From Macrostomum hystrix (Eukaryota; Animalia; Platyhelminthes), in assembly GCA_950097015.1 (NCBI GenBank), contig CATNEN010000025.1, forward strand, positions 9,641,800 to 9,705,799: DNA of 64,000 nucleotides, given 5' to 3'. Of this stretch, positions 1 to 27,227 are shown piece by piece; position 1 is the first letter of the stretch; each line of letters begins with the position of its first letter. The notes under the pieces were generated by a model. It did no database searches, was not told the origin of the DNA, and worked only from the letters and a program-made list of their open reading frames with translations. A program made the translations under genes and the position numbers.

Positions 1-450
1 ATGCTGGTATCAGTATCAGACAGGCTGATCATCTAGGCAGAATAGCTGCAGCTGGACACTGCAGCATGACAGTCTGGCCCTGGCAAAGCTGAGCAAACTG
101 CCACCCCAAGTCTGCCAATCTTTGTCACATTCCATGGAGTCCATGGGTGGCAGTAATGTGTTAATTTGTGAGAGTGAGAAAAAGGGATTTGTGTGCAAAT
201 TTTTAAGTAAATGTTCAATTCTTTATATTCAAGCAAGTGTATAGAAATGACGCCCAAGTGCAGGTCAGCAATCTCCACAGACTGTAGTTACATGGCCACA
301 ATACTTGTGGGAATATATGTTGAATATAAGTGCTATGATTTCATTATAGAATATATAAAACTTTATAGTATTAAATAGAAAACAGTTGTCTGTCTACAAT
401 ATTAAATACTGTAAACCAATGATTATAAATTACTTTCTCATTTCCAGACA

Positions 451-2898
451 ATGTATCGCGGCATCGAACTGAAGCGTGTTGTCAAAGCTACACTGCAAAC
501 TGGCTGTCGTGGGCGACCCAGAAAGATTAAGACAATCATTAGCGGCCGAAATCGAGGCTCAACATCTCGGCGTCCTGTGTCTGAAACTACTCCTGTTCCA
601 GTGGAAGCTAGCACCGAGAATGATGTCGGTATGCCTGAGTCTTTTGCTCCTACAGTAGAAGATGTTGAATGGGTAGATTTTGACAGCTTTGCTGAGAAAT
701 ACAGAGGTAGTTACGAGAAGCATTTTCTCTTAAATCTGTGTTCCTCTTGCTATGAGCACGAAGGTGTATATCGATGTGTTACTTGTCGACTTAGCTTATG
801 TGCCAGCTGTAAGAATGAGACGCATAAAAAGTTTTCAGCCCACAAGTTTCTCATATGGAATAAGGAGAGTCTAATGTTTCAGGAACTGGATGCTACTCAC
901 GATGCTTTTGAAATGTTTTGCTGCGCTTCTAGTAAATTGAATCTGAATGTCTGTGCGGCTACAAAAGTTGACCTTATAGATCTGGCTGGAAGCGTAAAGG
1001 TCATTTTTATTACCTGCGACTCCTGTGATCTTATTGGTGCACTCCTTTCTCAAGGGTTCTTCCCTTGTTGCGAAGGGTCAAAGCCTGATTCAGATGGGTA
1101 TGCATTCTTTTCTTTTACCTTTTTGTCCCTGCTAGACAGTTTGTGTATGACTGGGCAGTTGCCTGTTCACAGAGCGGTCAGTACACTGCTCATTGGGCCA
1201 ACTCTGGGACAAGGTACATATAATTTGGCTCTTGTAAAAAGCACTTATCAACGCATTCAACGACATGATGTTTTGCTGCGGTTTCGCCACCTGCAAATGG
1301 CCTCAGCAAAATGGCCAAATAATTGTCTTCTCTGTCCAGATAATCACGCTGTGCGCAAAACTGTTGTCTGTGCAGATGCTCTATTTGGTTGGCAGCGCTT
1401 TAAAGCCAGGGGGCGTACACAACTGGAAATACCATCAGATGGTCGTCCATTACCTACGCCGCTTGTCTATGTAGATATTAAAGCGGATGTGCCAAAAAAT
1501 CGAGCAGAGGAACAGAATTGTCCTAATTGGAAGGCCGGTGCTCATGAACCATTAAGCCGTGAGCAGAGACATGATGTCACGGGTTTCTTTGGATTATTCT
1601 GTCGTCACAATCGCCTTTTGTGTGGCTCAAATATCACAACTGGTGGAGAAAAGTTTTGCTACCTGGAACAGTGCCTTGAACACTTTCTGCGAAACGTCAA
1701 AGTGTCTAAGGAATTACTTGTCGTATATGACGTGGGTAAGTTTATTATTATTTTATAAAATGCATACAATCTATGAAATACTGTTGCTTGTGTACAGTTA
1801 TATGACAACATGACTTACTCTTTATCCCAATTCACAGGCTGTCGCGTATCCAGCCGGGTTAAATCCGCTATTGCGAAGTCTGGTGCCAACATTCAAGCGA
1901 GTAGCTGTGCAATAAACGCTTTTCATGCTCTTGGTCACCTGCCCAGTTGTCAAAAAAAGTTTTCTGTTCGCGTTACTCCAGGCGCAGGTCTATGCGATGG
2001 AGAGAATACTGAGCGAGCCTGGTCTCAACTCAGGCCGTTCGGTAAGTTTTTAAAGTACATGCGGAAAGACCGACGAGCACAATACATGGCGCATATTCTA
2101 TACTTCTTTAATGCACAACAGCTTCTTAGCGCTTCTGGGTGGTTTACACAACGTATTAAGCTTATGGTAGGTGCGGGAAAAAGCATTCTAAGTGAACTAA
2201 AAGAGCTACAAAGCCAGTCTGCGATTTTGCAGCACTCGGGGGTCCGAAATGACAGTCTGGTCATCTCTGAGGATGAAATTTTGGATTTAGGCTCCCAATG
2301 GTATGAAGATTCCCTCCGAGTAGCTGTACACAACTCGGAAGATGATATCCTATGTGAGCTACGCGCTCTTGCAGTGCACAGAGATCATTGGAGTAAACAG
2401 GTTGGTAAGTCAGTTGGCCAAAGTCAAACCAGAATGTGCTTGCGAAAGGTTAAAAGTTATGCATCCGACATGAAAAAACTCTACGCTCGTCTTCCAATTG
2501 AAGACAGAGCTTCTTTCGATGAATATAAAAAACCGCGTAGTGCGAAATATGAACATTTGTCTGGAACCGACCTTTCCATCCGATTTCGTCAGCGGGCTAT
2601 AGACGTCAGTAACAAATATAAACGCCTAAAAGAAGAAGCGCATATTATTTCAGATGAGTGGGTTGACCTTCAGGTTAATTTGCAGAGCCTCTGTGATGAC
2701 TTAGCGAATCAGCCGGGCTTAGCCGCTCAATTTCGGGAATTGTTTAGAAGACTGCTTGAAGATGTTGCAAGTAAAAGCGTGACTGATGCTGTAAAATATC
2801 TTCTTGCGAATAAATTCTCCCTCAGCACACTGAGTCAGAGCGCTAATGAAGCGGTTGCTTCAGAAGATTCGGAGTCTTCTGATAGCGACTCCGATTAA
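451..2898 (+). CDS. KDZ (Kyakuja-Dileera-Zisupton) family transposase with N-terminal CxC cysteine cluster; exons 451-1735 and 1838-2898, 781 aa if the ATG at 451 is the start
   Basis: Intron 1736-1837 (GTAAG...ttcacAG, phase 1) joins the two ORFs in frame, giving YDVG|CRV; 1285+1061=2346 nt. KDZ-like motifs: CADALFG, VTGFFGLFCRH, GEKFCY, YDVGC, FHALGHLPSCQ, GLCDGENTERAWS. N-terminal Cys/His cluster CSSC..YRCVTC..CASC..H..H..W and LLSQGFFP. An acceptor-like tttccAG at 446-447 suggests a further upstream exon or a spliced leader. Confidence 0.85.
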
Positions 2899-2970
2899 GT
2901 ATCCAACCAGTGTACTGATGATTCCACCGTTACTTGTGTTTTTAATTGAAGTCAAGCGCTGCCTTGTAAA

Positions 2971-3648
2971 GTCACTCTGCACCTACTTTTGTGTGGGTGC
3001 TGTGAAGCGTTAAGTTTAAGATCGCTAAAATTAATACCATTAAGCCCAAAATTTGGACACATTTCTTTCAACTAGCAAATTTTTTGCAGGTCACTTTGCA
3101 CATGCAATACAATGTGCTGTGAAGCGTTAAGTTTAAGAACGCTAAAATTAATACCAGTAAGCCCAAAGTTTGGACACATATTTCTTTCAACTAGCAAAAT
3201 ATTTACAGGTCACTTTGCACATGCAATTCAATGTGCTGTGAAGCGCTACATTTTAAAGCGCTATGAGCCCATGTGTCAGCCTTCTCGCGGCGGACTCGTT
3301 GAGCGCGAATAAAATCTGCTAATTACCGTGCGCTGCCAATCTTACCGTGCATGTTTGCACTATCCAGCGGACTGGCAGTGTACTTACGTTAGCTGTTTTT
3401 ATTCGTGGGACTAATGACACTATTAAATTCGTTCATTTATCAGCTTTTCCGTTCAATTCCGTTTTATTATTATTATATAGCTCACAGTTTCATTGTCTGT
3501 CAAATAAATGGAGGGGCTCCTAAACAGTGTTTCTCGTTCTTATTTTTTCATTGCTTGCCGTGCCTGATAAACATGTTTTCCTTTTTTAGCATTTACATAC
3601 TTGCGCCTATATACGTCACCGATTTCAGCGAAACGCAGGCAACTTAAA
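2971..3648 (+). repeat. Intergenic direct repeat copy A (~680 bp, with one extra ~117-bp subunit)
   Basis: Starts gtcactctgcacctac and ends gcaggcaacttaaa. Near-identical to 4815-5375 and to 6232-6675; the ORF track shows the same spurious peptides in each copy. Confidence 0.95.
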
Positions 3649-3696
3649 TAAACTCTTTAAAAAATCAAAATTCAGATTTCAAATTCAAAAGACAGC

Positions 3697-4709
3697 ATGC
3701 CCACTGATAAGCTCGATTGTCCGTTATGTCTTCCTGGTTTATCTGCCTATTCGGCCAGACCTGACAGGCTCGCTCTGCATATTGAAACGCATCATCCAAA
3801 CGCGAAAGGGAAGACGGAATGCATCATTCAATATCTACGTTGGTCGAAGAAGGCCGATGCAAAATTGTGCCAGCTATGCGATACATTCTATGTACATTTG
3901 CGGCAGCACTATAAGCTGATTCACACCATCGAATTCCGGCGACTTAACACTTTGCTGACAGGTCAACCAGCCATGCGACTCGCGCGAAAGCGTGGTGTTA
4001 AACGTTTTGGTGAAATATTCTGGTGGTTTACTTCCAATCAGCCGTTGCCAAACTATCCGTCCTCAGATGGCGACTGTGTTGGAAAGCTGGAAGAACAAAG
4101 GTAATTAATTTGTGAAGGGCATGTCACGATCTCATTTAAAGCTTAGTTACGTAAAATGCAAACTGCCTGTGCCATCTGTATTTTCTAAGTCTTGTCAACA
4201 CTTCCCACAGGCACTGCGAATCTTCTGCTGGCCAACGATCATGCATAGATGTCTACAGGAAAAGTTCAAATTTCGTCCCAGCCAAGGTTTTAGTGAAGCC
4301 TTCTGGTGAGAAGGGTCTCGGTATTTTTGCTGGTGAACTAATTAGAGCTGATTCATTCGTGTGCTTCTATGGTGGCACCGTAATATCTAGAAAACAAGGA
4401 CTCGCCAGAGAGCAGGAGAGGGCATCTAAAGGCGAGTCACCTTGTTTTGCGTTTTTCTTTTTTTATGGCTCCCAATCGCTTTGCGAAGATGCTACTGATA
4501 GTTTTTCCCTTGGTCGGTTTATTAATCACAGTCGGTTGACTCCAAATCTAATGCCAAGGGCGATACCACCATGTAAAGAAATCGGACGGAACGTCTGCAG
4601 GATCGCTTTTTTTGCTATTCGGGACATTCTAGAAGGGCAAGAATTGCTCTTCGATTATTCTGAAACTGACGAAGAGTGTCTAAAGAGGTTTCCCTGGCTG
4701 CAATCTTAA
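3697..4709 (+). CDS. Two C2H2-like zinc fingers plus SETD8/KMT5A (PR-Set7)-like SET lysine methyltransferase; exons 3697-4100 and 4211-4709, 300 aa
   Basis: Intron 4101-4210 (GTAATT...cccacAG, phase 2) fuses the ZnF ORF to the SET ORF with no stop; 404+499=903 nt. SET motifs: EKGLGIFA, FVCFYGG, LCEDAT, LGRFINHS, RDILEGQELLFDY, and C-terminal FPWL as in SETD8 (HPWL). Fingers: CPLC..HIETHH and CQLC..HYKLIH. Confidence 0.88.
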
Positions 4710-4814
4710 AAGTTCAAAAAATTGTACCAACTAGTCACTGCTAATCATTTTGAATTTGTTGCACATGCGTCAGACAAATTTCTTCAAAACTTGTCGCATA
4801 AAACATTACAGCAG

Positions 4815-5375
4815 GTCACTCTGCACCTACTTTTGTGTGGGTGCTGTGAAGCGTTAAGTTTAAGAACGCTAAAATTAATACCAGTAAGCCCAAAGTTTGG
4901 ACACATATTTCTTTCAACTAGCAAAATATTTACAGGTCACTTTGCACATGCAATTCAATGTGCTGTGAAGCGCTACATTTTAAAGCGCTATGAGCCCATG
5001 TGTCAGCCTTCTCGCGGCGGACTCGTTGAGCGCGAATAAAATCTGCTAATTACCGTGCTCTGCCAATCTTACCGTGCATGTTTGCACTATCCAGCGGACT
5101 GGCAGTGTACTTACGTTAGCTGTTTTTATTCGTGGGACTAATGACACTATTAAATTCGTTCATTTATCAGCTTTTCCGTTCAATTCCGTTTTATTATTAT
5201 TATATAGCTCACAGTTTCATTGTCTGTCAAATAAATGGAGGGGCTCCTAAACAGTGTTTCTCGTTCTTATTTTTTCATTGCTTGCCGTGCCTGATAAACA
5301 TGTTTTCCTTTTTTAGCATTTACATACTTGTGCCTATATACGTCACCGATTTCAGCGAAACGCAGGCAACTTAAA
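4815..5375 (+). repeat. Intergenic direct repeat copy B (561 bp)
   Basis: Same sequence as the shared part of copy A apart from a few substitutions (e.g. gtgctctg vs gtgcgctg, ttgtgcct vs ttgcgcct). Confidence 0.95.
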
Positions 5376-5416
5376 AAAAACTTTAAACTTCAAACTGTAA
5401 ACACACAAAACTCATC

Positions 5417-6151
5417 ATGCCCAACAAACACGCGAAAGTGTCCTGTCTTGTCTGTTCCAATTGGACTGGTAGATCCTACATGCTTTGGAGGCATTGCGAG
5501 AAAAGGCACCCCGCTCTGGAGGATGACAGGATTCAGGCGATGATTGACTTCGCGAAGGCGACTTCAAAAGCGAAGCCGGTGTGTCTCTGTCCGATATGCG
5601 GGGCTCTGATTTCTCACCAAAGAGCGCATTTTAAGAGATGCCACGTACCTGAATATGGCTCTACATACCGCCGCAAAGCCCTCTCGGGTCGTGCGGCTGT
5701 CCTGAAATTACGCGAATCAGGTTCGCGGCGTGTAGCAGAACTTCACAAACTTGCTACAGAAGAAAAGCATCCACTCCAATACATGGAACTTGAGTTCGCT
5801 GCTAGTCAGCTATCTATTCTGGTTGAGATGTACAAGGATATCGGCGAGGTACAAATTACATCAGCAACTAGCCAAGAGACGAGTGCGTCAACAAAACTTC
5901 CCGCAGAACAGCAGCAGCAGGAAGAGCGCTGCAACTCTTCTGAAGGTGCTCCTAAAAGTCCTAAACCTACGCCAGAAACTCATCGAGTTCCAGCTAAAAT
6001 CTGTCGAAACCCATTACCATTTGTGATTCCTCCAAGAGTCCCTTATTGCGTCAAACCCTTACCGCCTATTGTCTTGCGTAAATCTGCTACCAACTTGACC
6101 CGATATAACCCGAAAATTCCCACCTCGTCTCCCATAAAAATTGCTACCTGA
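5417..6151 (+). CDS. Two C2H2-like zinc fingers plus low-complexity S/P/K-rich tail, 244 aa; paralog of the ZnF-SET N-terminus
   Basis: Open ATG-to-stop ORF with CLVC-x12-H-x4-H and CPIC-x9-H-x4-H. It sits at the same position relative to the repeat as the ZnF-SET gene. An internal intron cannot be excluded. Confidence 0.7.
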   Translation: MPNKHAKVSCLVCSNWTGRSYMLWRHCEKRHPALEDDRIQAMIDFAKATSKAKPVCLCPICGALISHQRAHFKRCHVPEYGSTYRRKALSGRAAVLKLRESGSRRVAELHKLATEEKHPLQYMELEFAASQLSILVEMYKDIGEVQITSATSQETSASTKLPAEQQQQEERCNSSEGAPKSPKPTPETHRVPAKICRNPLPFVIPPRVPYCVKPLPPIVLRKSATNLTRYNPKIPTSSPIKIAT

Positions 6152-6231
6152 GGTCTTCCTGTTGGAACAAAATACCATACCACCCCTATCCCATGGAAAA
6201 ATTGGTATATCGACAGAGCCAATTACAGCAA

Positions 6232-6675
6232 GTCACTCTGCACCTACTTTTGTGTGGGTGCTGTGAAGCGTTAAGTTTAAGAGCGCTAAAATGAATACCA
6301 GTGAGGCCAAATTTTGGATACAATTCATTCAACTAGCAAAATATTTACAGGTCACTTTGCACATGCAATTCAATGTGCTGTGAAGCGCTACGTTTTAAAG
6401 CGCTATGAGCCCATGTGTCAGCCTTCTCGCGGCGGACTCGTTGAGCGCGAATAAAATCTGCTAATTACCGTGCGCTGCCAATCTTACCGTGCATGTTTGC
6501 ACTATCCAGCGGACTGGCAGTGTACTTACGTTAGCTGTTTTTATTCGTGGGACTAATGACACTATTAAATTCGTTCATTTATCAGCTTTTCCGTTCAATT
6601 CCGTTTTATTATTATTATATAGCTCACAGTTTCATTGTCTGTCAAATAAATGGAGGGGCTCCTAAACAGTGTTTC
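6232..6675 (+). repeat. Intergenic direct repeat copy C (3'-truncated or diverged)
   Basis: Matches copies A/B from gtcactctgcac to cctaaacagtgtttc, then diverges. Confidence 0.92.
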
Positions 6676-6944
6676 GCGTTTTCGTTTTTTAATTGCTTGT
6701 TTTTTAGATGCGCTTTCTTTCTGCTCATTAGTTGGCTGTGCAGGGAACAACTAGGACAAATGGAGATAGATGTGCATTTGAGAATAGACTGCCTGCTTTA
6801 TACAATTATATGCATGGCAGATCAATGTCCTTATTAGCGTTTATATATTAGCGTTCACGCCTTCATTTAGGGTCTAGCTTTAATTGTCAACGTTTCAAAC
6901 TTCAATCTCGAATAAATTTCAGGCCAGCATCACTTCCATTGAAA

Positions 6945-6989
6945 GTTGATGACACCTCCCAACATTGGGAGTTGGGAGGTGTCATCAAC
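6945..6989. other. Perfect 19-bp inverted repeat with 7-nt loop
   Basis: gttgatgacacctcccaac - attggga - gttgggaggtgtcatcaac. Confidence 0.95.
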
Positions 6990-7438
6990 ATTGGGATGAC
7001 GTGCGCGATGTCAACATGATGACGTGCGCGAGCATTCAACACAATGGAAATGACGATCCATACAATTTTTTAGGCGGTGTTTCTGGTCTTTCAACCGTTG
7101 TGACCAATATTTGAAGAAGCATCTTGCTAACGATATTTTAGCTTTTATAACTATTTGCACAATTAAAGGTACGTGGCTACGCACTTCTACGCCTTTAGCC
7201 TTGTCTAATGTCATTTTTCAATTCCCTCCAGTCGTCCAAGGCGTTTTGTTGTTATGCGAACTCGGCCAATCTGACTTCATAATTGCTTCATATGCGTTCA
7301 TATGCATACAAGTGTGAATGCTCATATGCGTGTGTACACCTTTCGTGTCTGCTTGCCTGCAATCCTACTTGTGCATGTATTTGACTTACCTATAGTCATT
7401 ACACTTAGCTAGAGTAATTTAGCCCAGGTGTGGCAACA

Positions 7439-8080
7439 ATGGTCAGAGGAGAGCTAGAGTCAAACTGTTCAGAATATGTTCCGATGACTAAATTATTCAG
7501 TTTTCCCTGGTAGTCATGCAATTTCTTGGATGGTCAGAGGAGAGCTAGAGTCAAACTGTTCAGAATATGTTCCGATGACTAAATTATTCAGTTTTCCCTG
7601 GTAGTCATGCAATTTCTTCAATGGTCAGAGGAGAGCTAGAGTCAAACTGTTCAGAATATGTTCCGATGACTAAATTATTCAGTTTTCCCTGGTAGTCATG
7701 CAATTTCTTGGATGGTCAGAGGAGAGCTAGAGTCAAACTGTTCAGAATATGTTCCGATGACTAAATTATTCAGTTTTCCCTGGTAGTCATGCAATTTCTT
7801 CAATGGTCAGAGGAGGGCTAGAGTCAAACTGTTCAGAATATGTTCCGATGACTAAATTATTCAGTTTTCCCTGGTAGTCATGCAATTTCTTGGATGGTCA
7901 GAGGAGAGCTAGAGTCAAACTGTTCAGAATATGTTCCGATGACTAAATTATTCAGTTTTCCCTGGTAGTCATGCAATTTCTTGGATGGTCAGAGGAGAGC
8001 TAGAGTCAAACTGTTCAGAATATGTTCCGATGACTAAATTATTCAGTTTTCCCTGGTAGTCATGCAATTTCTTCAATGGT
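7439..8080. repeat. Tandem repeat, 91-bp unit, 7 copies
   Basis: ggtcagagga... recurs at 7441, 7532, 7623, 7714, 7805, 7896 and 7987; a partial copy starts at 8078. Confidence 0.97.
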
Positions 8081-8447
8081 CGTGCTCCCTTGCAAACGAG
8101 CAGCGGAGTGAGAGGAGAGAGTTCTGAAGTTCTGAACGCGTTTGACAATGATAAAATATCAAACTCTAATACCTGCTTTCTTTATGCTCACTGTGCATGC
8201 ACTGTATGTGTTTTTACGTGAGGGTCTGTACTTTGTTCAATTAATGTTTCTGTCTAACTAGGACTTTTCACCAATTCTTTTCCGTGTCAATCTTCAGGGA
8301 AAATACATAAGCTAATTTATCAAAACATATCAGCGCATCTCATTGGCAAAAATTGTGCCGCACAGGCACGGCATAGGTGACCTGCTGCAAGGTATACTGA
8401 CTAAAATTATTATTATGTTATTATTATTACTTCTTTCTTGGAATCAC

Positions 8448-8720
8448 AGGGTGAGGTGACAGAGAAGAGGGTGAGGTGACAGAGGAGAGAGTGGGGTGAC
8501 AGAGAGGAGAGAGTGAGGGCACAGAGGAGAAAGTGAGGGCACAGAGGAGAAAGTGAGGGCACAGAGGAGAAAGTGAGGGCACAGAGGAGAAAGTGAGGGC
8601 ACAGAGGAGAAAGTGAGGGCACAGAGGAGAAAGTGAGGGCACAGAGTGGAGAAAGTGAGGGCACAAAGGAGAAAGTGAGGGCACAGAGTGGAGAAAGTGA
8701 GGGCACAGAGAGGAGAAAGT
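8448..8720. repeat. Purine-rich minisatellite, ~20-bp unit (gaggagaaagtgagggcaca)
   Basis: Direct reading of about 13 units. Confidence 0.95.
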
Positions 8721-8831
8721 TAACTTTGATGAATTTCGATGGGATTTGATTCCCCGTATTCTGGGATAGACGTAGAAGCGATCCCTGTCGAAATCCGGGG
8801 TCAATAAGTAAGCCTGCGGCGTCGCATCACA

Positions 8832-11800
8832 CAGACTATACTTAATTATTACTATTGTAGCCAGATTTATAAACTTGAACTGGAGCTTGTGGGCACCTAT
8901 TGCCGTTTAGGAAAATTCAAGAAACCAACAATTGCAGTGCCACGCTTGGCCTCAACTACATGATTTTCGCACTACAAAGACTATACTTAATTACTATTGT
9001 AGCCCGATTTATAAACTTGAACTGGAGCTTGTGGGCACCTATTGCCGTTTAGGAAAATTCAAGAAACCAACAATTGCAGTGCCACGCTTGGCCTCAACTA
9101 CATGATTTTCGCACTACAAAGACTATACTTAATTACTATTGTAGCCAGATTTATAAACTTGAACTGGAGCTTGTGGGCACCTATTGCCGTTTAGGAAAAT
9201 TCAAGAAACCAACAATTGCAGTGCCACGCTTGGCCTCAACTACATGATTTTCGCACTACAAAGACTATACTTAATTACTATTGTAGCCAGATTTATAAAC
9301 TTGAACTGGAGCTTGTGGGCACCTATTGCCGTTTAGGAAAATTCAAGAAACCAACAATTGCAGTGCCACGCTTGGCCTCAACTACATGATTTTCGCACTA
9401 CAAAGACTATACTTAATTACTATTGTAGCCAGATTTATAAACTTGAACTGGAGCTTGTGGGCACCTATTGCCGTTTAGGAAAATTCAAGAAACCAACAAT
9501 TGCAGTGCCACGCTTGGCCTCAACTACATGATTTTCGCACTACAAAGACTATACTTAATTACTATTGTAGCCAGATTTATAAACTTGAACTGGAGCTTGT
9601 GGGCACCTATTGCCGTTTAGGAAAATTCAAGAAACCAACAATTGCAGTGCCACGCTTGGCCTCAACTACATGATTTTCGCACTACAAAGACTATACTTAA
9701 TTACTATTGTAGCCAGATTTATAAACTTGAACTGGAGCTTGTGGGCACCTATTGCCGTTTAGGAAAATTCAAGAAACCAACAATTGCAGTGCCACGCTTG
9801 GCCTCAACTACATGATTTTCGCACTACAAAGACTATACTTAATTACTATTGTAGCCAGATTTATAAACTTGAACTGGAGCTTGTGGGCACCTATTGCCGT
9901 TTAGGAAAATTCAAGAAACCAACAATTGCAGTGCCACGCTTGGCCTCAACTACATGATTTTCGCACTACAAAGACTATACTTAATTACTATTGTAGCCAG
10001 ATTTATAAACTTGAACTGGAGCTTGTGGGCACCTATTGCCGTTTAGGAAAATTCAAGAAACCAACAATTGCAGTGCCACGCTTGGCCTCAACTACATGAT
10101 TTTCGCACTACAAAGACTATACTTAATTACTATTGTAGCCAGATTTATAAACTTGAACTGGAGCTTGTGGGCACCTATTGCCGTTTAGGAAAATTCAAGA
10201 AACCAACAATTGGTGCCACGCTTGACCTCAACTACATGATTTTCGCACTTCAAAGACTATACTTAATTACTATTGTAGCCAGATTTATAAACTTGAACTG
10301 GAGCTTGTGGGCACCTATTGCCGTTTAGGAAAATTCAAGAAACCAACAATTGCAGTGCCACGCTTGGCCTCAACTACATGATTTTCGCACTACAAAGACT
10401 ATACTTAATTACTATTGTAGCCAGGTTTATAAACTTGAACTGGAGCTTGTGGGCACCTATTGCTGTTTAGGAAAATGCAAGAAACCAACAATTGGTGCCA
10501 CGCTTGACCTCAACTACATGATTTTCGCACTTCAAAGACTATACTTAATTACTATTGTAGCCAGATTTATAAACTTGAACTGGAGCTTGTGGGCACCTAT
10601 TGCTGTTTAGGAAAATGCAAGAAACCAACAATTGGTGCCACGCTTGGCCTCAACTACATGATTTTCGCACTTCAAAGACTATACTTAATTACTATTGTAG
10701 CCAGATTTATAAACTTGAACTGGAGCTTGTGGGCACCTATTGCTGTTTAGGAAAATGCAAGAAACCAACAATTGGTGCCACGCTTGACCTCAACTACATG
10801 ATTTTCGCACTTCAAAGACTATACTTAATTACTATTGTAGCCAGATTTATAAACTTGAACTGGAGCTTGTGGGCACCTATTGCCGTTTAGGAAAATTCAA
10901 GAAACCAACAATTGCAGTGCCACGCTTGGCCTCAACTACATGATTTTCGCACTACAAAGACTATACTTAATTACTATTGTAGCCAGGTTTATAAACTTGA
11001 ACTGGAGCTTGTGGGCACCTATTGCTGTTTAGGAAAATGCAAGAAACCAACAATTGGTGCCACGCTTGACCTCAACTACATGATTTTCGCACTTCAAAGA
11101 CTATACTTAATTACTATTGTAGCCAGATTTATAAACTTGAACTGGAGCTTGTGGGCACCTATTGCCGTTTAGGAAAATTCAAGAAACCAACAATTGCAGT
11201 GCCACGCTTGGCCTCAACTACATGATTTTCGCACTTCAAAGACTATACTGAATTACTATTGTAGCCAGATTTATAAACTTGAACTGGAGCTTGTGGGCAC
11301 CTATTGCTGTTTAGGAAAATGCAAGAAACCAACAATTGGTGCCACGCTTGACCTCAACTACATGATTTTCGCACTTCAAAGACTATACTTAATTACTATT
11401 GTAGCCAGATTTATAAACTTGAACTGGAGCTTGTGGGCACCTATTGCCGTTTAGGAAAATTCAAGAAACCAACAATTGCAGTGCCACGCTTGGCCTCAAC
11501 TACATGATTTTCGCACTACAAAGACTATACTTAATTACTATTGTAGCCAGGTTTATAAACTTGAACTGGAGCTTGTGGGCACCTATTGCTGTTTAGGAAA
11601 ATGCAAGAAACCAACAATTGGTGCCACGCTTGACCTCAACTACATGATTTTCGCACTTCAAAGACTATACTTAATTACTATTGTAGCCAGATTTATAAAC
11701 TTGAACTGGAGCTTGTGGGCACCTATTGCTGTTTAGGAAAATGCAAGAAACCAACAATTGGTGCCACGCTTGGCCTCAACTACATGATTTTCGCACTTCA

Positions 11801-12918
11801 AAGACTATACTTAATTACTATTGTAGCCAGATTTATAAACTTGAACTGGAGCTTGTGGGCACCTATTGCTGTTTAGGAAAATGCAAGAAACCAACAATTG
11901 GTGCCACGCTTGACCTCAACTACATGATTTTCGCACTTCAAAGACTATACTTAATTACTATTGTAGCCAGATTTATAAACTTGAACTGGAGCTTGTGGGC
12001 ACCTATTGCCGTTTAGGAAAATTCAAGAAACCAACAATTGCAGTGCCACGCTTGGCCTCAACTACATGATTTTCGCACTACAAAGACTATACTTAATTAC
12101 TATTGTAGCCAGGTTTATAAACTTGAACTGGAGCTTGTGGGCACCTATTGCTGTTTAGGAAAATGCAAGAAACCAACAATTGGTGCCACGCTTGACCTCA
12201 ACTACATGATTTTCGCACTTCAAAGACTATACTTAATTACTATTGTAGCCAGATTTATAAACTTGAACTGGAGCTTGTGGGCACCTATTGCCGTTTAGGA
12301 AAATTCAAGAAACCAACAATTGCAGTGCCACGCTTGGCCTCAACTACATGATTTTCGCACTTCAAAGACTATACTGAATTACTATTGTAGCCAGATTTAT
12401 AAACTTGAACTGGAGCTTGTGGGCACCTATTGCTGTTTAGGAAAATGCAAGAAACCAACAATTGGTGCCACGCTTGACCTCAACTACATGATTTTCGCAC
12501 TTCAAAGACTATACTTAATTACTATTGTAGCCAGATTTATAAACTTGAACTGGAGCTTGTGGGCACCTATTGCTGTTTAGGAAAATGCAAGAAACCAACA
12601 ATTGGTGCCACGCTTGACCTCAACTACATGATTTTCGCACTTCAAAGACTATACTTAATTACTATTGTAGCCAGATTTATAAACTTGAACTGGAGCTTGT
12701 GGGCACCTATTGCTGTTTAGGAAAATGCAAGAAACCAACAATTGGTGCCACGCTTGACCTCAACTACATGATTTTCGCACTTCAAAGACTATACTTAATT
12801 ACTATTGTAGCCAGATTTATAAACTTGAACTGGAGCTTGTGGGCACCTATTGCTGTTTAGGAAAATGCAAGAAACCAACAATTGGTGCCACGCTTGACCT
12901 CAACTACATGATTTTCGC
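8832..12918. repeat. Satellite array, 142/140-bp monomers (~29 copies), with 1126-bp higher-order repeat
   Basis: Period 142 (cacgcttgg at 8941, 9083, 9225). The 140-bp variant reads ttggtgcc instead of ttgcagtgcc. A diagnostic atactgaatt variant occurs at 11250 and 12376 (1126 apart). A diverged monomer lies at ~13003-13090. Confidence 0.97.
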
Positions 12919-13779
12919 AGCCAGTTTCCCAGTTTCCCCAGTTTCTCCAGTTTCCATGGAGAGACCTGGCGTATATTGTTGTTGTTGTTGTTGTTGTTTC
13001 GCAGCACACAGACTACTTAATTATTACTATTGTAGCCAGAGTTATAAACTTTAACTGGGGCTCGAGCTTGTGGGCACCTATTGCCGTTTGCATGCACTTG
13101 TCACCACTGTCTGCTGTTGTTTGTGTCTCATGCTTGGTTTGCGTGCGACTGGGTTGGGCCGTCTGTCTGGGATCCCCCAAATCCCCAGCCCTGCAGGGTC
13201 TGGAAATTAGACTGCATGAACGCATATATAAGGAGCCGCGATATCAGACTGGTTCTTTACTGTGTGTTTCAATTCTGGCCTTACTTCTGCCTTTGAGTTA
13301 TTACAACTTACTCAAGAAGCCGTTTACAAATTATCAGTAAGATATATACATGTAGCTTGTGGATGCACAGCACGATTTTGTGAATGTCACACGATATGAC
13401 ATCCCTCAGAGAAACGGAAATTAAAGGGAAGCATTCTTCATGAACTTATACTCATCTATGAGCAAAATGAGGTGTGCAACGAAGCCAATAATGAGGTAAG
13501 TCAGAGTTTAACAAACACTAGCCCATATCAAAATAATAAATATATATGTGTGTGTATCTGGCTTAACCTAAAGTCAGTACAACTACTGTACCGTACTTTA
13601 TGTTTGTCAGTAGATGAATCGGAGATAATCCGAGAATCCATCAATAAATTATTTTTATGAGGCCTATAAACCAATATCAAGAGCAATGTTTCAAAATACG
13701 GATATATGACTTAGTATTTATTTTTTAAGTTAGTAATCAGCACCAACAGCTTGGAACTTGAAAGTTCATTCAGTCCATT

Positions 13780-14530
13780 GTGCTAAGCTGTTTTCAAAAA
13801 GAAATGACGAAGCAAAACCAGCCTAGACAGTGTCTCGTCAGAAAGGATCGTGAACGAACTTTGGTCAGAAAAGTTCCACTGACCGAAAAGGCGCGCTCAG
13901 CTTCAACACTTGTCGGAGGGATGAGCATCACAGCTTCACGCTGCTGTGCAATGCGAAGAATCTCTCGACCAATGCGACTCTCCAGTGACATGCAGTGTGT
14001 TTTAGGCTTAGAGCTCTTCTCTAGGAATGACTTCACTTGATCAGCCAGACCGCTTTCATCTGCCACATCATCATTGTCGTCACCATAATGGGCATTTGTG
14101 GCTGAACTCAAATCAATGGAAGCTGAACTGGTGTCTTTATCAGTAGCAACTTGGGCAGCATCTTCAGCTGCATATAGGTTTAACTTACTAGCCAGTGTGA
14201 TCAGTGAATACTTCACAGCATTTAACTCACTTTGTGAGTCAGTGATTCCATACCGAGATAAAAATCAGGCGAATCGCGATTCGAGACTAGAAGCAATCTG
14301 AATTAAACAAAGCATCTCAAAATTTTCTCATTTACACGTTGCATGAGCAGTTGCTTAACTTTATACTCGCAATCAGGCATGAGTCGCTTTCTGTTATTTT
14401 TGTAATTAAAAAACACAAAAACAATAAAAAGCACAGCTAAGCAAGAGTGAGAAGATAAGCAAAAAAGGCGTTCGACAGGGTGACGGAAAAAAATCTCGTT
14501 TATAAGGTGAGCGGCATGTTGAATCAAAGG
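13780..14530 (-). pseudogene. hAT transposase relic (C-terminal dimerisation region)
   Basis: LIPPTSVEAERAFSVSGTFLTKVRSR, continuing after a frameshift as SDETLSRLVLLRHFF. Confidence 0.8.
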
Positions 14531-15439
14531 CTCATAGGCTCATAGATTCGTAGCAAAAGCCGTAGCAGGAATCGTTGCCAGAATCGCAGCACAGCAGTAC
14601 AAGATTGAGCACAGAGAAGCAATAATGAGCACATAAGCAATAATGAGCACAAATAAGCAATAATGAGCACAGATTAAGCAGGAGCACATACAAAAGCGGG
14701 CGCAACAGGAGAAAGATTCAGTCTTTAAAATTTCATCAACTTTCGGCGGACAAACCGTTACTGTTGATTGCGACTGATTACATTTGACTACTGTGCATGG
14801 GTCTGTGCAAAGTCTGCAAAATACCTTATTTCTGTAAATGTATTAATTTTGGACTGCTCCTGCACAGCCCTCTGTTATGTATATTTGTATTATTGCATCC
14901 CATGCTTGGCTTGGATCAGTGATGCATCCTACATGTGGAAGTCAGTCACGAATTTCCCCTCTCAATCGGCAAGTAATCGGCGAGACAGCTTGCCACCTGT
15001 CTCACTGAGGTCAGTCCAGGGTTTGCACTTTCTCAACACGCAAGTCAGGCGTCGGTGAGGCAGGTCTGCGGATCCAATATCGGCAGCACGGGTGTCACCT
15101 GGCCTTGCTTCCGTCTGCCGGTGGCGCCACCGCCGCTTCCGCCGCGACGCCGCCTCCGCCACCGAAGCCGCCAACCCAGGCAGCAGACGTCCAGGCCCAT
15201 TCGCTTGACCTCCGGTTTCGAGCGCAGCTCCGTGATCAGGTTGGTCTGCAGCAGCTCCTGTAGAAGGTCCTGGCGGGACAAGCCTGGAGCTGATGGATTG
15301 TCCAAGTTGACAACCAAGTTTGAGAGCCCGTTGATGCGTCTGATGAAGACTATACGTGTCGGTAGGCCTGTTTGAGTAGTGCAGGTGAGTACGGGCTTGA
15401 TGTCTAACAGGTACCATGCCAAGCAGAACAGGTGAACAC

Positions 15440-15635
15440 TGTGTCTAACAGAACAGGTGATCACAGGCTCTGTCTAACAGGTGACGCTCTCTGTCTAACA
15501 GTTGACGCTGTCGGCCTAACAAATGACGCTCTTTGTCTAACAGGTGACGCTCTTTGTCTACCAGGTGGCGCTCTCTGTCTAACAATTGACGCTGTCGGCC
15601 TAACAAATGACGCTCTTGGTCTAACAGGTATTTCT
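15440..15635. repeat. Degenerate ~21-bp minisatellite with TGTCTAACA core
   Basis: tgtctaacaggtgacgctct-type units. Confidence 0.85.
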
Positions 15636-16607
15636 AACAGAAATGAATTCCAGAATGACAGATTTAGAATGACAAATGAATTCCAGAATGACTAGTGATG
15701 GACAGATTAAAACAGGACTTGATCTTCATTCATATTCACATTAGAAAATGTCAAGTAACTTACTGGAAATGCAGGCGCATCACTGATCTAGACCACAGGT
15801 CGAAGAGAGGTAGCCACGTGGCTAGTGCACTAGGCAGAATCGCACATCAAGAGTCAGCAGCTGCCATCAGACACAAGTTAATCCTGGAATGGTGCAGGCT
15901 TTAGCACAACGTATTAATAATGTCAAATCAAAGTGAATGAAGTACTGCGATAAAATGACTCCGTGATGGCAAAGGAAAGAAGATTAAAGGCAACACAATT
16001 ATCCAAAAATAGGCTTCAGGCCATCCACCATCCACCATTCACGCGAAGCATAAAAGACTTGGCCTTTGCAGAAATATTTAATAGTATTCAGCGGTACTTG
16101 TAACTGTCTAAATAGACACTTGTACAAGCCTTCCGCACAAGTAGGAGATGCAAGTTGGGCGAATGTTTATGAGTTCGATTTTTCAGACACGGTTTACATA
16201 TTCGAGAAACAGTAATTGACTTTTGTCTAAATTTATTCTTGTCAAAAGGTGTGTTTGAGATCGACCCATTTTATTTTTAAATACAAGGCTGCTTTGCTGA
16301 TCGGGCTATTTGTATTTAGCAGAATTTAATTTGTAAGAAATTCATAAAGTACACTTTTCCTATTGTCTTAAATCATGTCATTCAATTACCATAGTGTTCG
16401 CTTTAATTATCTGTTTTTTGAGCCAAGAAAAGTTGAAAAAATTCTTTCTGAAGAAGAGAAGCTTTAGAAACAAATATTAGTTTTAAAAAATTTCACGATA
16501 AGTCGTTTATCTCTACGACTTAGAGACGAAAAACAATTATATAGGGTGCGTACGAAAACAATTATAACTATCTAATTATAATTATAACTTCCACCAATAA
16601 TTGGAGA

Positions 16608-16769
16608 GGCAATCTTCGGCTGAATATGCGGACTTTGACTATAACTATAAATCAACTATATAATCAACTGTAAATAATCAACTAATAATCAACTAATAAT
16701 CAACTATGAATATTCAACTATATATAATATTAAAATATCCTAAGTCCGCAGATTCAGCCGAAGATTGCC
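16608..16769. mobile_element. MITE-like 162-bp element with 28-bp terminal inverted repeats
   Basis: ggcaatcttcggctgaatatgcggactt / aagtccgcagattcagccgaagattgcc (1 mismatch); no TSD recognised. Confidence 0.6.
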
Positions 16770-16823
16770 CGATCTAAGGCGTCTTAGTCTTAGGCGTATT
16801 CTTCTTCTTTTTCTCTCCGCGAC

Positions 16824-16824
<1 letters not shown>

Positions 16825-16857
<33 letters not shown>
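16825..16857. repeat. (GGC)n microsatellite
   Basis: About 11 GGC units read directly. Confidence 0.95.
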
Positions 16858-16862
<5 letters not shown>

Positions 16863-19029
16863 ATCCACCATATTCTGGAATTTTGCATTAAATGCAAATT
16901 TTTTTATAAATGAGCAATAACAATAATGTGTTGTAAGGCATGCTCTGTGGAAAAGTTAGCCCATTTAAATGGGCATCAGAAAGTCAGAATTAAAATGAGA
17001 TTTTTTATGACCGAGCAACAACAGTTATGAAACGACTTGCTTTCTAGGAAATATGGTTTCTATTCTGCATGTTATGAGGGACCATTTAAATTAACGTTTC
17101 GCGGTCAATTTCTATGAAGACAAGGGTTACGTCAAGTTATAAATTGCTTGTTTCACAGTATAAAAGCGAGGCATTTTGTGAAAGCGGAGAATATTGAAAT
17201 TTAGCAGAATACAATATGAAGTAATGTGCAGAGCTGGACAAGTGTTACTGCTAATCACAGGCTTGGGGAGGCAGTATGAGTCTGCTGTTTGTTTTATGTT
17301 TGACTTGCACAGTCGAAGTGTTTGACTCAAACAATATGAATCTACTGCTCTCAACCCAGTGCCGATGTCCTAACTTGTCAGCTTGGCTCATAGCTAATAT
17401 GTGACCTGCTATGATCATCACTAAATGAATGCACCCTCATTCTATTCACGTATTAAAATGTACACCTCTAAGAGTATAAAGTTTCAGTGTATTATAAATA
17501 GTGAGCTATCCAAGCCTTTTTACATAGGCTACAGAGTTTATGCTTATCTTAATAAGTCTTAATATTAGGAAAAAAACTGTATAGTGGGTCTATACGCATA
17601 GCTTATTGGCTGGCCACTCGTCATAATTGTATAGAAACAATGCATTATTCTAAATGAAATTAGGACCCAGGAATATAAATTCTTATTAAGATTTCCAAGC
17701 AACTACTGGGATATGGGATCTATGACCTGGGAGCCTAGGATCAAGGACTAGTATTGCCATTGCAGTTTGGCCTTTTTTCTGTAGCCCTAAAAAATTCCGC
17801 AGGGCTTAATTCTATGATTGAATTGATAATTAGTGGAATATGTAATCCAAAGTAAACTAATTGACTATTGTATATCCACTTCCAAAAATGGTATTATCAG
17901 TATGGTATACTTGCCAATTTGCACCCACTTCATAGGTCACATATTTAAAAGAATTGTGCTTTTAAATGAAAGATTGAATAAAATGAGGGGAAGAAATAAG
18001 AAAATTGGAACCAAAGTCTAACATCTGTCATCTATAGGGTAATGTATCATCAACCAAACAAGAATGTGTATTTTTTAACTTCGAACCTAAGCTACAGATT
18101 TTCTATTTAAGATATGATGATAAATCAAAAGCCAAGTTATAGAAAACAGTTACATCTTTCTAAAAAGTGTCTGCTTTTGCTATTTTGTCAAATAGAAAAA
18201 AGTTATTCCTGTAACTAGGTTTCATCTAAAACCTAACAATGATTTTCATGTATCTTCAAACCAAATGGAGAAGTTGGTGTTTGGTTTTACAATTTGAGTG
18301 AGTGGTTTAATCTTATTTTGCCATATGAAGTGCTGTCAAAGTGTAGACTACAATTCTGTGTAAGCTAGAAGGATAGGAATGTGAGGGATGGGAATGTGAG
18401 TGAATAGGAATGGGAGGAAGGGAAAAGGATCCCTGTGGCCCCGTGGCACTTGGGTGCCGCAGCCCCTCATGCAGCAGCTACATGAGTTTAATACTCTGGC
18501 ACCTTCTATTTGCTGCTGAGCATAGCTCACACAGGTAGGAAACATTGGCAACTATAAAAATTTCTGCTACATATTTTTAATGCCATCCAAACAAAAATAA
18601 CTGCCTATGTCCCATAGCTACTGAACTTGAGCTCTGAGTGAGCATGGACATGGTCAGGTTTATTAAATGTTTTTAGTGGGATCACATTTTTCACATTGCT
18701 TGAATGGGGAGTAGGTTATCTAGGGAATATAAGATCTATGGACACTGACCTATTAGGACAGGGTTGGTAACCATTTTTATCTTGTAGGCCAGATAGAGAT
18801 TTGAGCACATGGGTCATGGCTTATGAACACATGGAAGAAGTGGAAGTGTAAGTAGAAGAGTAGAAGCTTAGAGGGTGGAGTGGAGAGGAGGCTGCATTGG
18901 GTGGGGTTGGGTTTGGTAGATTTGGGCTAGATTTAGTAAGCCATGCAAGTAAAGTATGGGGTAGATATCTGCTCCTGTCCTGTCTGTCTACCTGTCTGTC
19001 TGCCTACCTGCCTGCCTGCCTGCTTGCCT

Positions 19030-19345
19030 GAGGGCACTGGTCCCCTCTATAACAGGGGGGCACTGACCCCTCTCTAGCAGGGAGGGCACTGATCACTCTA
19101 GCAGGGAGGGAACTGGCCCCTCTAGCAGGGAGGGCACTGACCCCTCTCTAGCAGGGAGGGCACTGATCACTCTAGCAGGGAGGGAACTGGCCCCTCTAGC
19201 AGGGAGGGCACTGACCCCTCTCTAGCAGGGAGGGCACTGATCACTCTAGCAGGGAGGGAACTGGCCCCTCTAGCAGGGAGGGCACTGACCCCTCTCTAGC
19301 AGGGAGGGCACTGACCCCTCTCTAGCAAGGAGGGCACTGACCACT
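19030..19345. repeat. Minisatellite, 74-bp period built from three 24-26-bp subunits (ctctagcagggaggg...)
   Basis: gatcac at 19091, 19165 and 19239. Confidence 0.92.
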
Positions 19346-20831
19346 TTCCAATCCCACGATCCCCTTTCCAATCCCATGATCTCAATTCTAATCCCATGAT
19401 CTCAATTCTCTCCTCTCTGCCCCTTACTCCCTCCTGTCTGCCCGAATTAAACAATGAACAATATAAACAATCCACAATACGAAAATAGTCAATAATATAG
19501 TCAACAAAATTAGCCATTTTTAATAAAAGAAACGAAATAATGATGTTTAGTTGTTCCTTGGTCTTTAATAAAGAGGAGAGTTAGGGAGAATGCGATGAGA
19601 ATATGTTCTTCTCAGAGTTCTTCTGTTTTTCTCAATCTCAGATAGTCTTTGCAAAGCTCAACGTTATAAAAATAAAGATGGACTAAAGTTTATTAGATTC
19701 GATAAACAATTTTCTTTCTTAGTGGAATCAACAAGTCCACTGTCTAATGACAAAATAGTTTGAGAGTCGAGACTGAACGAGCGTCTTTTTCTGGTCTTGT
19801 GTTAAATAGATGGTGTGATATGCAGGACACCATAATAGGCAAGCCAGGAGCCTCAAGACAGAGAGGACACGCGATTATGGGGTTTGGGAAATGGGGTGGG
19901 TGTCATTAAATGAATCACAGCGAATCGCACGCGAATATGGGGTTTTGGGAATGGGGTGGGTGTTAAATGACTGACAAATATTTTTGGTTTGGAAGGATCG
20001 ATAAATTAAACGGCCGTTAGTTTGGCTCGGTGTGAGAAGGGTTTAGTCAAAGGACCCCTATATAGCAGCATCTGCACTGGAAGCTAAACGGAAAAGTTTA
20101 GTTTGTAGTTAAAATTAGTAGTTATTTGCAAGGACTACTAGAGTAGAAGGACGCGACACTTGAAGACTATGTAAATTTTATTAAAGGCCACTTTTCTAAG
20201 CGATGTCTTTTTTAAACGGATGCACATAGAAATTTACTTTTTTCGCTGGGACCTTCGAAATTTATTGCCCTTGAAGATAAAATACATTTGCGTCTGGATA
20301 AACATATTTTTTAAACTCGCTAATCTGATGGCCCCTGCTACCCCTGATGTGGGATAACTGCTGAAGTGGGATAACTGCTGCACTGGGAAAACTGCAGAAG
20401 TTGAATTACTGGATGAAGTTAGATAACTGCTGAAGTAAGATAACAGGTTAAGTGGGATTACTCCTGAAGTGGGCTATCTGATGAAATGGGATTTCTGCCG
20501 ATATGGGATAACTGTAGATGGGGGATAACTGGTGAAAGGGGATAGCTGCTTAAGGGGATATCTGATGAAGTGACGAATTTAGTTAGTGACGAATTTTTTA
20601 ATAACTGAATAATTCGGGGCGGCTTAATTGCTATTCACATTCTAAAATTAAAATTTGGACTGGAAGCGGAGCTGATATCTTCCTTTTTTCTAAGACTTGT
20701 GGCCAATAAAATTGCCCGATTTACACAGGGGCAGGGCAGATAGACAGGATCAGGCACACATAGACAGAAAATAGCGTATATATTTTTTGGCTGGACCGAC
20801 TTTTCCAAATTTTTGCTTCCCCAGAACTCAC

Positions 20832-21914
20832 CAAAAAGCGATGCCGCCGCCTCCTGGCGGCCCGCCCGGGCCCCAATGCCAGGGCGGCATGAATCCAAAA
20901 TTTCTGCAAAATACAAGGCCTTCTGGCAATTGAATTGATTTAGAGAATTCCATCATTAGCTGTGAATCAGACAAAAAATTAACTTACCCTCGGCAAAAGG
21001 CGGACAAGCTCCGGAGCTTTACCTGCTCCATCAGGAGCAGGTAAGCTCGCACGCTGTCTCTCTGCAAATTTATAAAACAAAAAATATAGAGCAAGGACGA
21101 AGGACGGTTGTTAGTACAATCCTGTATAACTGATAAACGGGGATAACTCATGAAATGGGATAACTAATGAACGGGGATGATTGCATGATAAAGTCAATAA
21201 CTGAAGAAGTGGGATTTTGGAGAAGGATTTGGGATCAGAGAAGGACTTTGGATCTGGGATTAAAGCTGTAAATCCCAAAACCCCGAATCAACGAATAAAT
21301 GCATATTTCTGCTATTGACTGCACTGAAGAATTAATTTATAAAGTTAGGAGGGTCACTGTCAACAGCACTATTTAAAGGCACAGAAACTCACATTCATCT
21401 TCCAATTTCGCCACTTGCGGCCTCCCCGATGATGAGGGCGGCCGCGGCGAATCTGCTGCTGGGGATGGGGGGGAGGGTGGGCTGGGCCTGGGTTGGGTTG
21501 GGGAGGGATGGGACGGGCTGGACGGGGGGGTTGGCCGACTGGGGCAGGGGTGGTAAGGGTGGGTTGTGGGCCTGGGTTGGGTTGAGGAGGGATGGGGCGG
21601 GCTGGACGGGGCGGTTGGCCGACTGGGGCAGGGGTGGTGAGGGTGGGTTGTGGGCCTGGGTTGGGTTGAGGAGGGATGGGGCGGGCTGGAAGGTTGGGTT
21701 GGGCGGGGAGAAGAGGGCGGACTGGGGCAGGGGCAGGCTGGGTCGGGATCGGGGGGGGAGCGCCGGCCACCCGGGCATATGAAGCCCTGGTGGCCGGCCT
21801 GGACGGTGGCGGCGAAGGCGGCGGCGTTGGCGGTGGCGGGGGGCGGGGCGGGGCCCGCAAGGGACGGGCGTCGGCCCGACCCTTTTTTCTGCCGGCCGAT
21901 TTTTTCTTTGATGC
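20832..21914 (-). CDS. Internal exons of an unknown proline-rich, basic protein (exons 21914-21393, 21061-21023, 20903-20832)
   Basis: Each exon is bounded by canonical AG/GT (tttcag/gtgagt, ttgcag/gtaaag, ttgcag/gtgagt). Lengths are 522, 39 and 72 nt, all phase 0 and stop-free: ASKKK...Pro-rich...RGGRKWRNWKMN-RDSVRAYLLLMEQ-KFWIHAALALGPGRAARRRRHRFL. Start and end exons were not resolved. Confidence 0.5.
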
Positions 21915-27060: not shown

Positions 27061-27227
27061 ACAAATATGGATTGATTTTGACATGCCACAAACTCTTACA
27101 ATACATTATTACAAATACGAAAATATTAAACTGACATGGGTCAAATAACAAATATGGATTGATTTTGACATGCCACAAACTCTTACAATACATTATTACA
27201 AATAGGAAAATATTAAACCGACATGGG
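27061..27227. repeat. Direct duplication, 87-bp period, 2 copies
   Basis: acaaatatggattgattttgacatgcc at 27061 and 27148. Confidence 0.9.

Follow-up and report, generated by a model that had tools for sequence, protein, structure and literature searches.

Internal repeats between the genes of a giant KDZ transposon of Macrostomum hystrix: a probable shared gene-boundary module

In a stretch of 64,000 nucleotides (nt) from the genome of the flatworm Macrostomum hystrix (NCBI GenBank assembly GCA_950097015.1, contig CATNEN010000025.1, positions 9,641,800 to 9,705,799 of the forward strand; hereafter the window), a gene for a KDZ (Kyakuja-Dileera-Zisupton) transposase is followed by spacer A, a zinc-finger (ZnF) gene with a SET domain (ZnF-SET), spacer B, a second zinc-finger gene (ZnF2) and spacer C. 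A preliminary description made from the sequence had given this order, which is borne out by gene models, Pfam and the coordinates of the spacers. It had missed the setting: the array is the interior of a multi-copy KDZ transposon of about 31.6 kb and no free-standing locus. We find it probable that the three spacers, which are 480-690 bp long and near-identical where they align, are internal direct repeats of this giant, recently active cut-and-paste transposon and that they act as a shared gene-boundary module.

The genome searched was the 220-Mb assembly, in which the window lies at the end of a 9.7-Mb contig. Starting from one common left base, copies on contigs C26, C7 and C1 are 99.9-100% identical to the window; beyond this base the flanks are unrelated, and the left end is common to four loci with unrelated flanks. 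In the window copy it is found at L031:4993, 4007 bp ahead of the first base of the window. On the other side, at least 15 copies terminate at window position 27629/27630 in the genome search, and the exact right-end motif is present in 17 copies. The termini read 5'-CAG..GTG-3' and form imperfect inverted repeats of about 100 bp, the left ends of other copies matching the right-end stretch in reverse at 74%. Both the window copy (Table 1) and the C7 copy (AAATTTTA) are flanked by an 8-bp target-site duplication of their own. Element length is about 31.4-31.9 kb across copies, with 31,350 bp in the C26 copy. In known KDZ elements, target-site duplications of 8 bp are described for Zisupton and Dileera and of 7 bp, together with CA..TG termini, for Kyakuja (PMC12730594). 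Because several copies are 99.9-100% identical and copies have common ends and carry 8-bp duplications and CA..TG termini as KDZ elements do, we regard the element as a KDZ transposon that evidently moved very recently.

The spacers belong to this element throughout the assembly. A genome search with spacer A returned 57 matches, all in copies or fragments of the element, and these either adjoin its transposase or lie within reach of its right end. The complete triple layout, with spacings of 1727 and 1415-1417 bp, was found at six loci with different flanks.

The anatomy of the spacers largely agrees with the preliminary description, which had reported near-identity of A and B, subunits of about 117 bp with one extra in A, and an AATAAA, a CCAAT, paired TTACCGTGC motifs and acceptor-like motifs. 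The subunits are real and measure 119 bp (2.1 copies at 2997-3245, the extra one in A), and AATAAA, CCAAT, the paired TTACCGTGC and TTNCAG occupy equivalent positions in all three spacers. Spacer C shows 96.6% identity to A and B over 444 bp and breaks off at 6699, the equivalent of position 3557 of A; as had been noticed, it is without the ATG-proximal part, that is, the last 105 bp or so nearest the ATG with TATATA included, and no gene follows it. No further ZnF match was detected downstream of ZnF2 in the spacer C stretch. The spacers had been said to end about 40-50 bp before the next ATG; they do end shortly before it, and the measured distances are 36 bp for ZnF-SET and 30 bp for ZnF2. 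At the opposite end, spacer homology begins 71-96 bp past each of the three stop codons, and the first AATAAA after every stop codon sits within the module, at 3308, 5035 and 6450. This AATAAA forms part of an imperfect hairpin with a fold energy of -46.3 kcal/mol (z -5.3; none of 200 shuffled sequences was equally stable). Neither the spacers nor the hairpin gave an Rfam match at E-values up to 1. The TATATA and TTTCAG pair of spacer A recurs in B at 5335-5340 and 5350-5355, and both motifs are absent from C. TATATA lies 82-89 bp and TTTCAG 62-69 bp upstream of each accessory ATG, and the transposase ATG is preceded by TTCCAG 4 nt upstream.

From these positions we infer that the module supplies a shared poly(A) signal and 3' end together with a promoter or a spliced-leader (SL) acceptor. 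For the reading as a start signal it also counts that the homology between A and B ends 30-36 bp before the ATG, near the start expected after a TATA box. The repeat consists of two parts. A 3' module of about 440-590 bp, placed after all three genes, comprises the 119-bp subunits and then the hairpin of about 105 nt with the first AATAAA; a 5' module of about 105 bp, placed only before the two accessory genes, contains TATATA and the TTTCAG acceptor motif. Such a module would end the upstream transcript and start the downstream one, either by a promoter or by an SL acceptor, and the two paralogous ZnF-adaptor genes would get the same expression control. Ordinary homologous recombination between the repeats has, as set out below, repeatedly removed one or both accessory genes and left a single hybrid repeat. 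The terminator-plus-promoter role suggested in the preliminary description is consistent with the sequence at motif level only, with AATAAA after each stop codon and TATATA before the accessory ATGs.

It is possible, if rather unlikely, that expression is operon-like, with one polycistronic RNA starting upstream of the transposase and the module acting as an intercistronic poly(A) signal plus SL acceptor with no promoter role. For the related flatworm Macrostomum lignano, the spliced-leader sequence and an acceptor motif [T/C]TNCAG have been described, trans-splicing affects 30% of genes, and neighbouring genes on one strand were counted as operons when less than 1 kb apart (PMC8629364). The exact 35-nt spliced leader of M. 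lignano occurs 23 times in the genome analysed here, and for this reason we conclude that the host uses SL trans-splicing. The stop-to-ATG gaps of 799 and 708 bp lie below the 1-kb limit of that study, TTTCAG, which precedes each accessory ATG but does not occur in C, fits the acceptor motif, and TTCCAG stands shortly before the transposase ATG. On the other hand, TATATA lies 15 bp upstream of the acceptor in A and B, which makes an own promoter equally possible, and intercistronic regions of M. lignano typically span about 100 bp (PMC8629364). As far as the motifs go, the start signal may equally well be a promoter or an acceptor for SL trans-splicing of a polycistronic RNA. The exact spliced leaders stand in tandem arrays about 11.6 kb apart (C39:12667884-12685526 and on C17, C15 and C42); a variant with 3 mismatches forms a separate array with a period of 927 bp, and many copies with 1-3 mismatches are dispersed genome-wide.

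How the spacers stay alike was addressed by counting differences over 417 shared bp. Within the window copy, A and B differ at 1 site and A and C at 10. Within the C1:3.57M copy there are 2 differences between A and B, 3 between B and C and 5 between A and C, while its spacers A, B and C differ from those at the same position of the window at 8, 7 and 12 sites, respectively. For the C1:17.6M copy the counts are 1 (A-C), 6 (A-B) and 7 (B-C) within the copy and 5, 6 and 14 for A, B and C against the window. Overall, the closer pairs within a copy are 1-5 sites apart, and spacers that occupy the same position in different copies are 5-14 sites apart. Six variants common to A and B of the C1:3.57M copy are absent from A and B of the window, and a haplotype with a 6-bp insertion is found at position A, B or C or in hybrid spacers, varying by copy. 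Since spacers inside one copy carry common copy-specific variants, these patterns show exchange of sequence by gene conversion, both within and between copies. This agrees with the earlier suggestion that conversion keeps the spacers uniform. Divergence between copies is about 1.5% in the spacers and about 0.6-0.7% in unique segments; because the spacers diverge more than the unique segments, exchange and not unusually strong constraint keeps them alike within an element.

The same data bear on the unlikely case that the spacers have no regulatory role and are what remains of an ancient tandem duplication in which a unit of flank, ZnF gene and flank was copied, with conversion keeping the flanks alike and the deletions a side effect. 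The two ZnF genes are paralogues, so that a tandem duplication did happen; the faster divergence of spacers than of unique DNA between copies gives no sign of strong constraint; and C retains degenerate traces of the ATG-proximal part. However, the repeat starts 71-96 bp after each stop codon and ends near the expected transcription start, the first AATAAA after all three stops is within the module, and the transposase, which is no paralogue of the ZnF genes, has the same 3' module.

Further information on the spacers comes from cassette classes mapped by landmarks on 16 loci. Six copies have the full structure. The C1:19.18M copy reads transposase-spacer-ZnF2-spacer, without ZnF-SET, and the C1:19.42M copy transposase-spacer-ZnF-SET-spacer, without ZnF2. 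Four copies have one spacer and zero cassettes, three more single-spacer copies are inferred from coordinates alone, and several copies show irregular deletions. No other gene lies between spacers in any copy, the spacings fitting only these two cassettes or their deletions; the two cassettes are always in the same order, and every variant is a deletion. The single leftover spacers are A/B, B/C and A/C hybrids, with A-type sites at the 5' side and B- or C-type sites at the 3' side. For example, the single spacer left in the no-cassette copy at C1:18.68M agrees with spacer A at every site as far as 3530 and has a C-type 3' end thereafter. The crossovers can be placed only to tracts of identity of 120-325 bp. 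In a tree based on 1355 bp of the transposase, four full copies are matched at 100% identity over this length by one no-cassette copy and by the copy without ZnF-SET, a second no-cassette copy falls in with another lineage of full copies, and two more stand elsewhere. Cassette-less copies occupy at least three places on the tree and cassette-bearing copies are spread across the whole of it. Because deleted forms are scattered among full copies on the tree and leave hybrid spacers, the simplest reading is recurrent loss of cassettes by ordinary homologous recombination between direct repeats. The preliminary description was correct in proposing that the spacers let cassettes be lost, as every class of deletion copy retains one hybrid spacer and cassettes were lost repeatedly. 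Gain of cassettes, which it also proposed, and variable cargo were seen in no copy, and its idea of a portable unit is not supported, the spacer never occurring outside copies of one element.

More speculatively, the module might be a functional exchange-and-expression unit by which element lineages add, drop or swap among each other genes composed of a ZnF adaptor and an effector (SET here, a PIAS-like SUMO ligase in M. lignano), with the conserved hairpin as a recombination site or as a source of small RNA for self-regulation. We consider this very doubtful; if true, it would amount to a eukaryotic transposon-borne cassette system. It is highly improbable that the array is an integron-like site-specific system, in which spacers or hairpins would be the sites where an element-encoded enzyme inserts, excises or circularises cassettes. 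Each spacer does hold a stable imperfect hairpin, copies differ in cassette number exactly at the spacers, and the ZnF module is joined to SET or PIAS-like effectors in a related species. However, there are only two cassettes in one fixed order with deletions as the sole variants, the crossovers lie within hundreds of identical bases as in homologous recombination, the spacer is without similarity to the element's ends, and no recombinase besides the DDE-type KDZ transposase was found among the open reading frames (ORFs) scanned, a scan that covered ORFs only and not all possible spliced genes. The absence of similarity between spacer and ends also led us to reject internal pseudo-ends as an explanation. 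Finally, it is scarcely credible that the spacer is an independent small mobile element (a short interspersed element, a miniature inverted-repeat transposable element or a solo long terminal repeat (LTR)) that landed three times, or an assembly artefact, both of which the preliminary description had considered and which we rejected: the spacer contains tandem subunits and an inverted repeat, but it was never found away from this transposon family (57 of 57 matches in element copies), shows neither target-site duplications nor terminal repeats of its own, and stands in the same threefold arrangement and spacing at six loci whose flanks differ, two of these loci having distinct target-site duplications.

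Several points weigh against the interpretation of the spacers as a shared boundary module of a mobile element. The motifs of the module are short and common, and the spacers vary too little for any covariation in the hairpin to show. The predicted target-site duplications of the C26 and C1:3.46M copies were not found, and both flanks are readable for one copy only. In addition, loss as opposed to gain of cassettes is deduced from the tree and the hybrid patterns and was not observed directly.

Table 1. Features of the KDZ transposon and of the gene array within the window (positions are those of the window unless given with a locus)
Feature	Position	Strand	Remark
KDZ transposon, in-window part	1..27630	+	shared left base and shared right end among copies
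KDZ transposase gene	451..2898; exons 451-1735, 1838-2898; 102-nt GT..AG intron	+	Pfam PF18758
Spacer A: 2.x subunits of 119 bp, shared core, ATG-proximal part 3558-3661	2969..3661	+	
Imperfect hairpin of ~105 nt, AATAAA in 5' arm	3304..3408; also ~5031-5135, ~6446-6550	+	36-nt arms
TATATA (3608-3613) and TTTCAG (3623-3628), ATG-proximal part of A	3608..3628	+	
ZnF-SET gene, 300 amino acids (aa)	3697..4709; exons 3697-4100, 4211-4709	+	SET domain PF00856, E 1.1e-15
Spacer B	4805..5387	+	99.1% identical to A over 548 bp
ZnF2 gene, 244 aa	5417..6151	+	same N-terminal two-finger module as ZnF-SET, with low-complexity tail
Spacer C: 3' module only, degenerate traces of ATG-proximal part	6222..6699	+	no gene after
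Right terminal inverted repeat, imperfect, ~74-80% to left end, ends ...GTG	27520..27630	+	inverted match of left end
8-bp target-site duplication CTATAGGC	27631..27638	.	second occurrence at L031:4985-4992

The genes of the array were characterised by protein searches, in which spliced proteins were searched exon by exon. Both transposase exons match PF18758 above its cut-off of 26.6 bits (exon 1, E 1.4e-9, 38.4 bits; exon 2, E 1.3e-15, 58.1 bits) and cover adjoining positions of the profile, 3-125 and 126-214, respectively. The genome holds at least 19 copies of this transposase at 92% aa identity or more. For an N-terminal CxC cluster, the match to CxC1 (PF18802), with E 0.034 and 14.7 bits, stays under the cut-off of 26.9, and a B-box-like match in the same Pfam scan is likewise under its cut-off. 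A second family of KDZ transposases, with 45-46% identity in exon 2, is represented at least 12 times (C34:1199948, C11:6071959, C33:1988278, C7:1402008 and others).

The ZnF-SET protein consists of an N-terminal two-finger module and a SETD8/KMT5A-like SET domain, to which SETD8/KMT5A are also the closest solved structures. P0002 of M. lignano, a 300-aa ZnF-SET protein encoded at four loci, is 61-62% identical to both ZnF-SET exons and thereby supports the splice model. ZnF2 gave no Pfam match, and its frame is open in all copies seen. The N-terminus of ZnF-SET and ZnF2 are 26-31% identical over about 115 aa with a pairwise E of 6e-9, and no DNA similarity between the two genes was detected. 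The two had been described as sharing motif-level similarity only; they are indeed distant, but the likeness goes beyond motifs, and judged by their sequences they are true, distant paralogues. The ZnF module is rare: a set of 1.8 billion representative proteins yielded 13 hits, the specific ones being from M. lignano, and among solved structures it gave only a marginal match to a BED finger (E 0.024). In M. lignano it occurs together with SET in P0004 and with PINIT and SP-RING in P0013, a PIAS-like SUMO ligase. This two-finger module of about 115 aa looks like an adaptor that is joined to various chromatin effectors. More ZnF or ZnF-SET paralogues are located at C1:17488657/17489713, C7:1432689-1433738, C3:11613651 and C2:2961393.

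Outside the array, the transposon contains satellites with units of 91 bp (x7, 7439-8081), 20 bp (x13, 8451-8720) and 142 bp (x29, 8833-12919), whose lengths vary from copy to copy of the element. Three tandem units of about 320 bp at L031:5470-6430 (window -3529 to -2566) each include a tRNA-like stretch, another such stretch lies near the left end of the element at L031:5198-5270, and ARAGORN predicted no tRNA genes in this tRNA-like left part. Besides the genes of the array, five further ORFs of the element gave zero matches to Pfam. Inside the element, a 373-aa open frame on the minus strand (23790-24911) has no Pfam match. Most copies of the element cluster on contig C1 at about 14-19.7 Mb and 3.4-4.0 Mb, and the same regions hold about 20 copies of a SET-only open frame of about 190 aa that is 31-34% identical to the SET domain of the window. 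The 25 nt to the left of the C26 copy (L032:968-992) are the reverse complement of the 25 nt to the left of the C7 copy (L034:968-992), and the left flank of the C1:3.46M copy (L036:930-991) resembles the element's own bases 91-150, approximately. To judge from these flanks, copies of the element appear to land in related repeats or in one another.

Taken together, comparing the locus from copy to copy reveals the organisation of a very large and recently active DNA transposon in an animal. One flanking module is common to its accessory chromatin genes; conversion keeps the copies of this module alike, and these repeats also render the cargo prone to loss. The element is a concrete example of how multi-gene transposons might co-regulate and shed their cargo, and ordinary homologous recombination explains the variation in cassette number, which corrects the integron analogy. 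Transgenesis has been reported for M. lignano (PMC8629364).

Features that the element has in common with the KDZ group are the KDZ domain, 5'-CA..TG-3' termini, a target-site duplication of 8 bp, the length also described for Zisupton and Dileera, and an accessory gene for an epigenetic enzyme. The group includes fungal elements with a gene for a TET/JBP dioxygenase (PMC12730594). Unlike the fungal ones, the present element resides in a flatworm, is 31.6 kb long, contains satellites and has as cargo a ZnF-SET lysine methyltransferase and a second ZnF gene. Internal repeats flanking each gene of a KDZ element are not mentioned in that paper, to which our look at the literature on this point was limited. 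SET-carrying HarbingerS and MuDR transposons of Phytophthora, cited in PMC12730594, are likewise cut-and-paste transposons with their own SET-domain histone methyltransferase. They differ in transposase superfamily and host, and in the present element the SET domain forms a fusion with a rare two-finger module, which the second gene encodes as well.

The resemblance to bacterial integron arrays lies in hairpin-containing repeated sites between genes and in a variable number of cassettes. Unlike in integrons, no site-specific recombinase was found here among the ORFs scanned, cargo and order are fixed, crossovers depend on homology, and each cassette apparently has its own upstream module. The integron analogy holds for appearance only. 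The deletions rather resemble the formation of solo LTRs, in which recombination between repeats several hundred bp long also leaves one hybrid repeat and recurs in independent copies; here, however, the repeats are internal intergenic modules and not LTRs, and three repeats give three deletion products. In MuDR, the terminal inverted repeats are nearly identical, and each of them drives one of the two genes. The KDZ element is similar in that one repeated sequence within a DNA transposon would serve as the regulatory flank of different genes, whereas the MuDR repeats are inverted termini and those described here are internal direct repeats whose promoter role is a matter of inference. Finally, the spacers are reminiscent of concerted evolution as known from ribosomal DNA intergenic spacers and the flanks of duplicated genes, since repeats within a unit are closer to each other than repeats of different units and variants are mosaic; in the present case, the converted tracts flank genes that have diverged beyond recognition at the DNA level, and the units are copies of a transposon.

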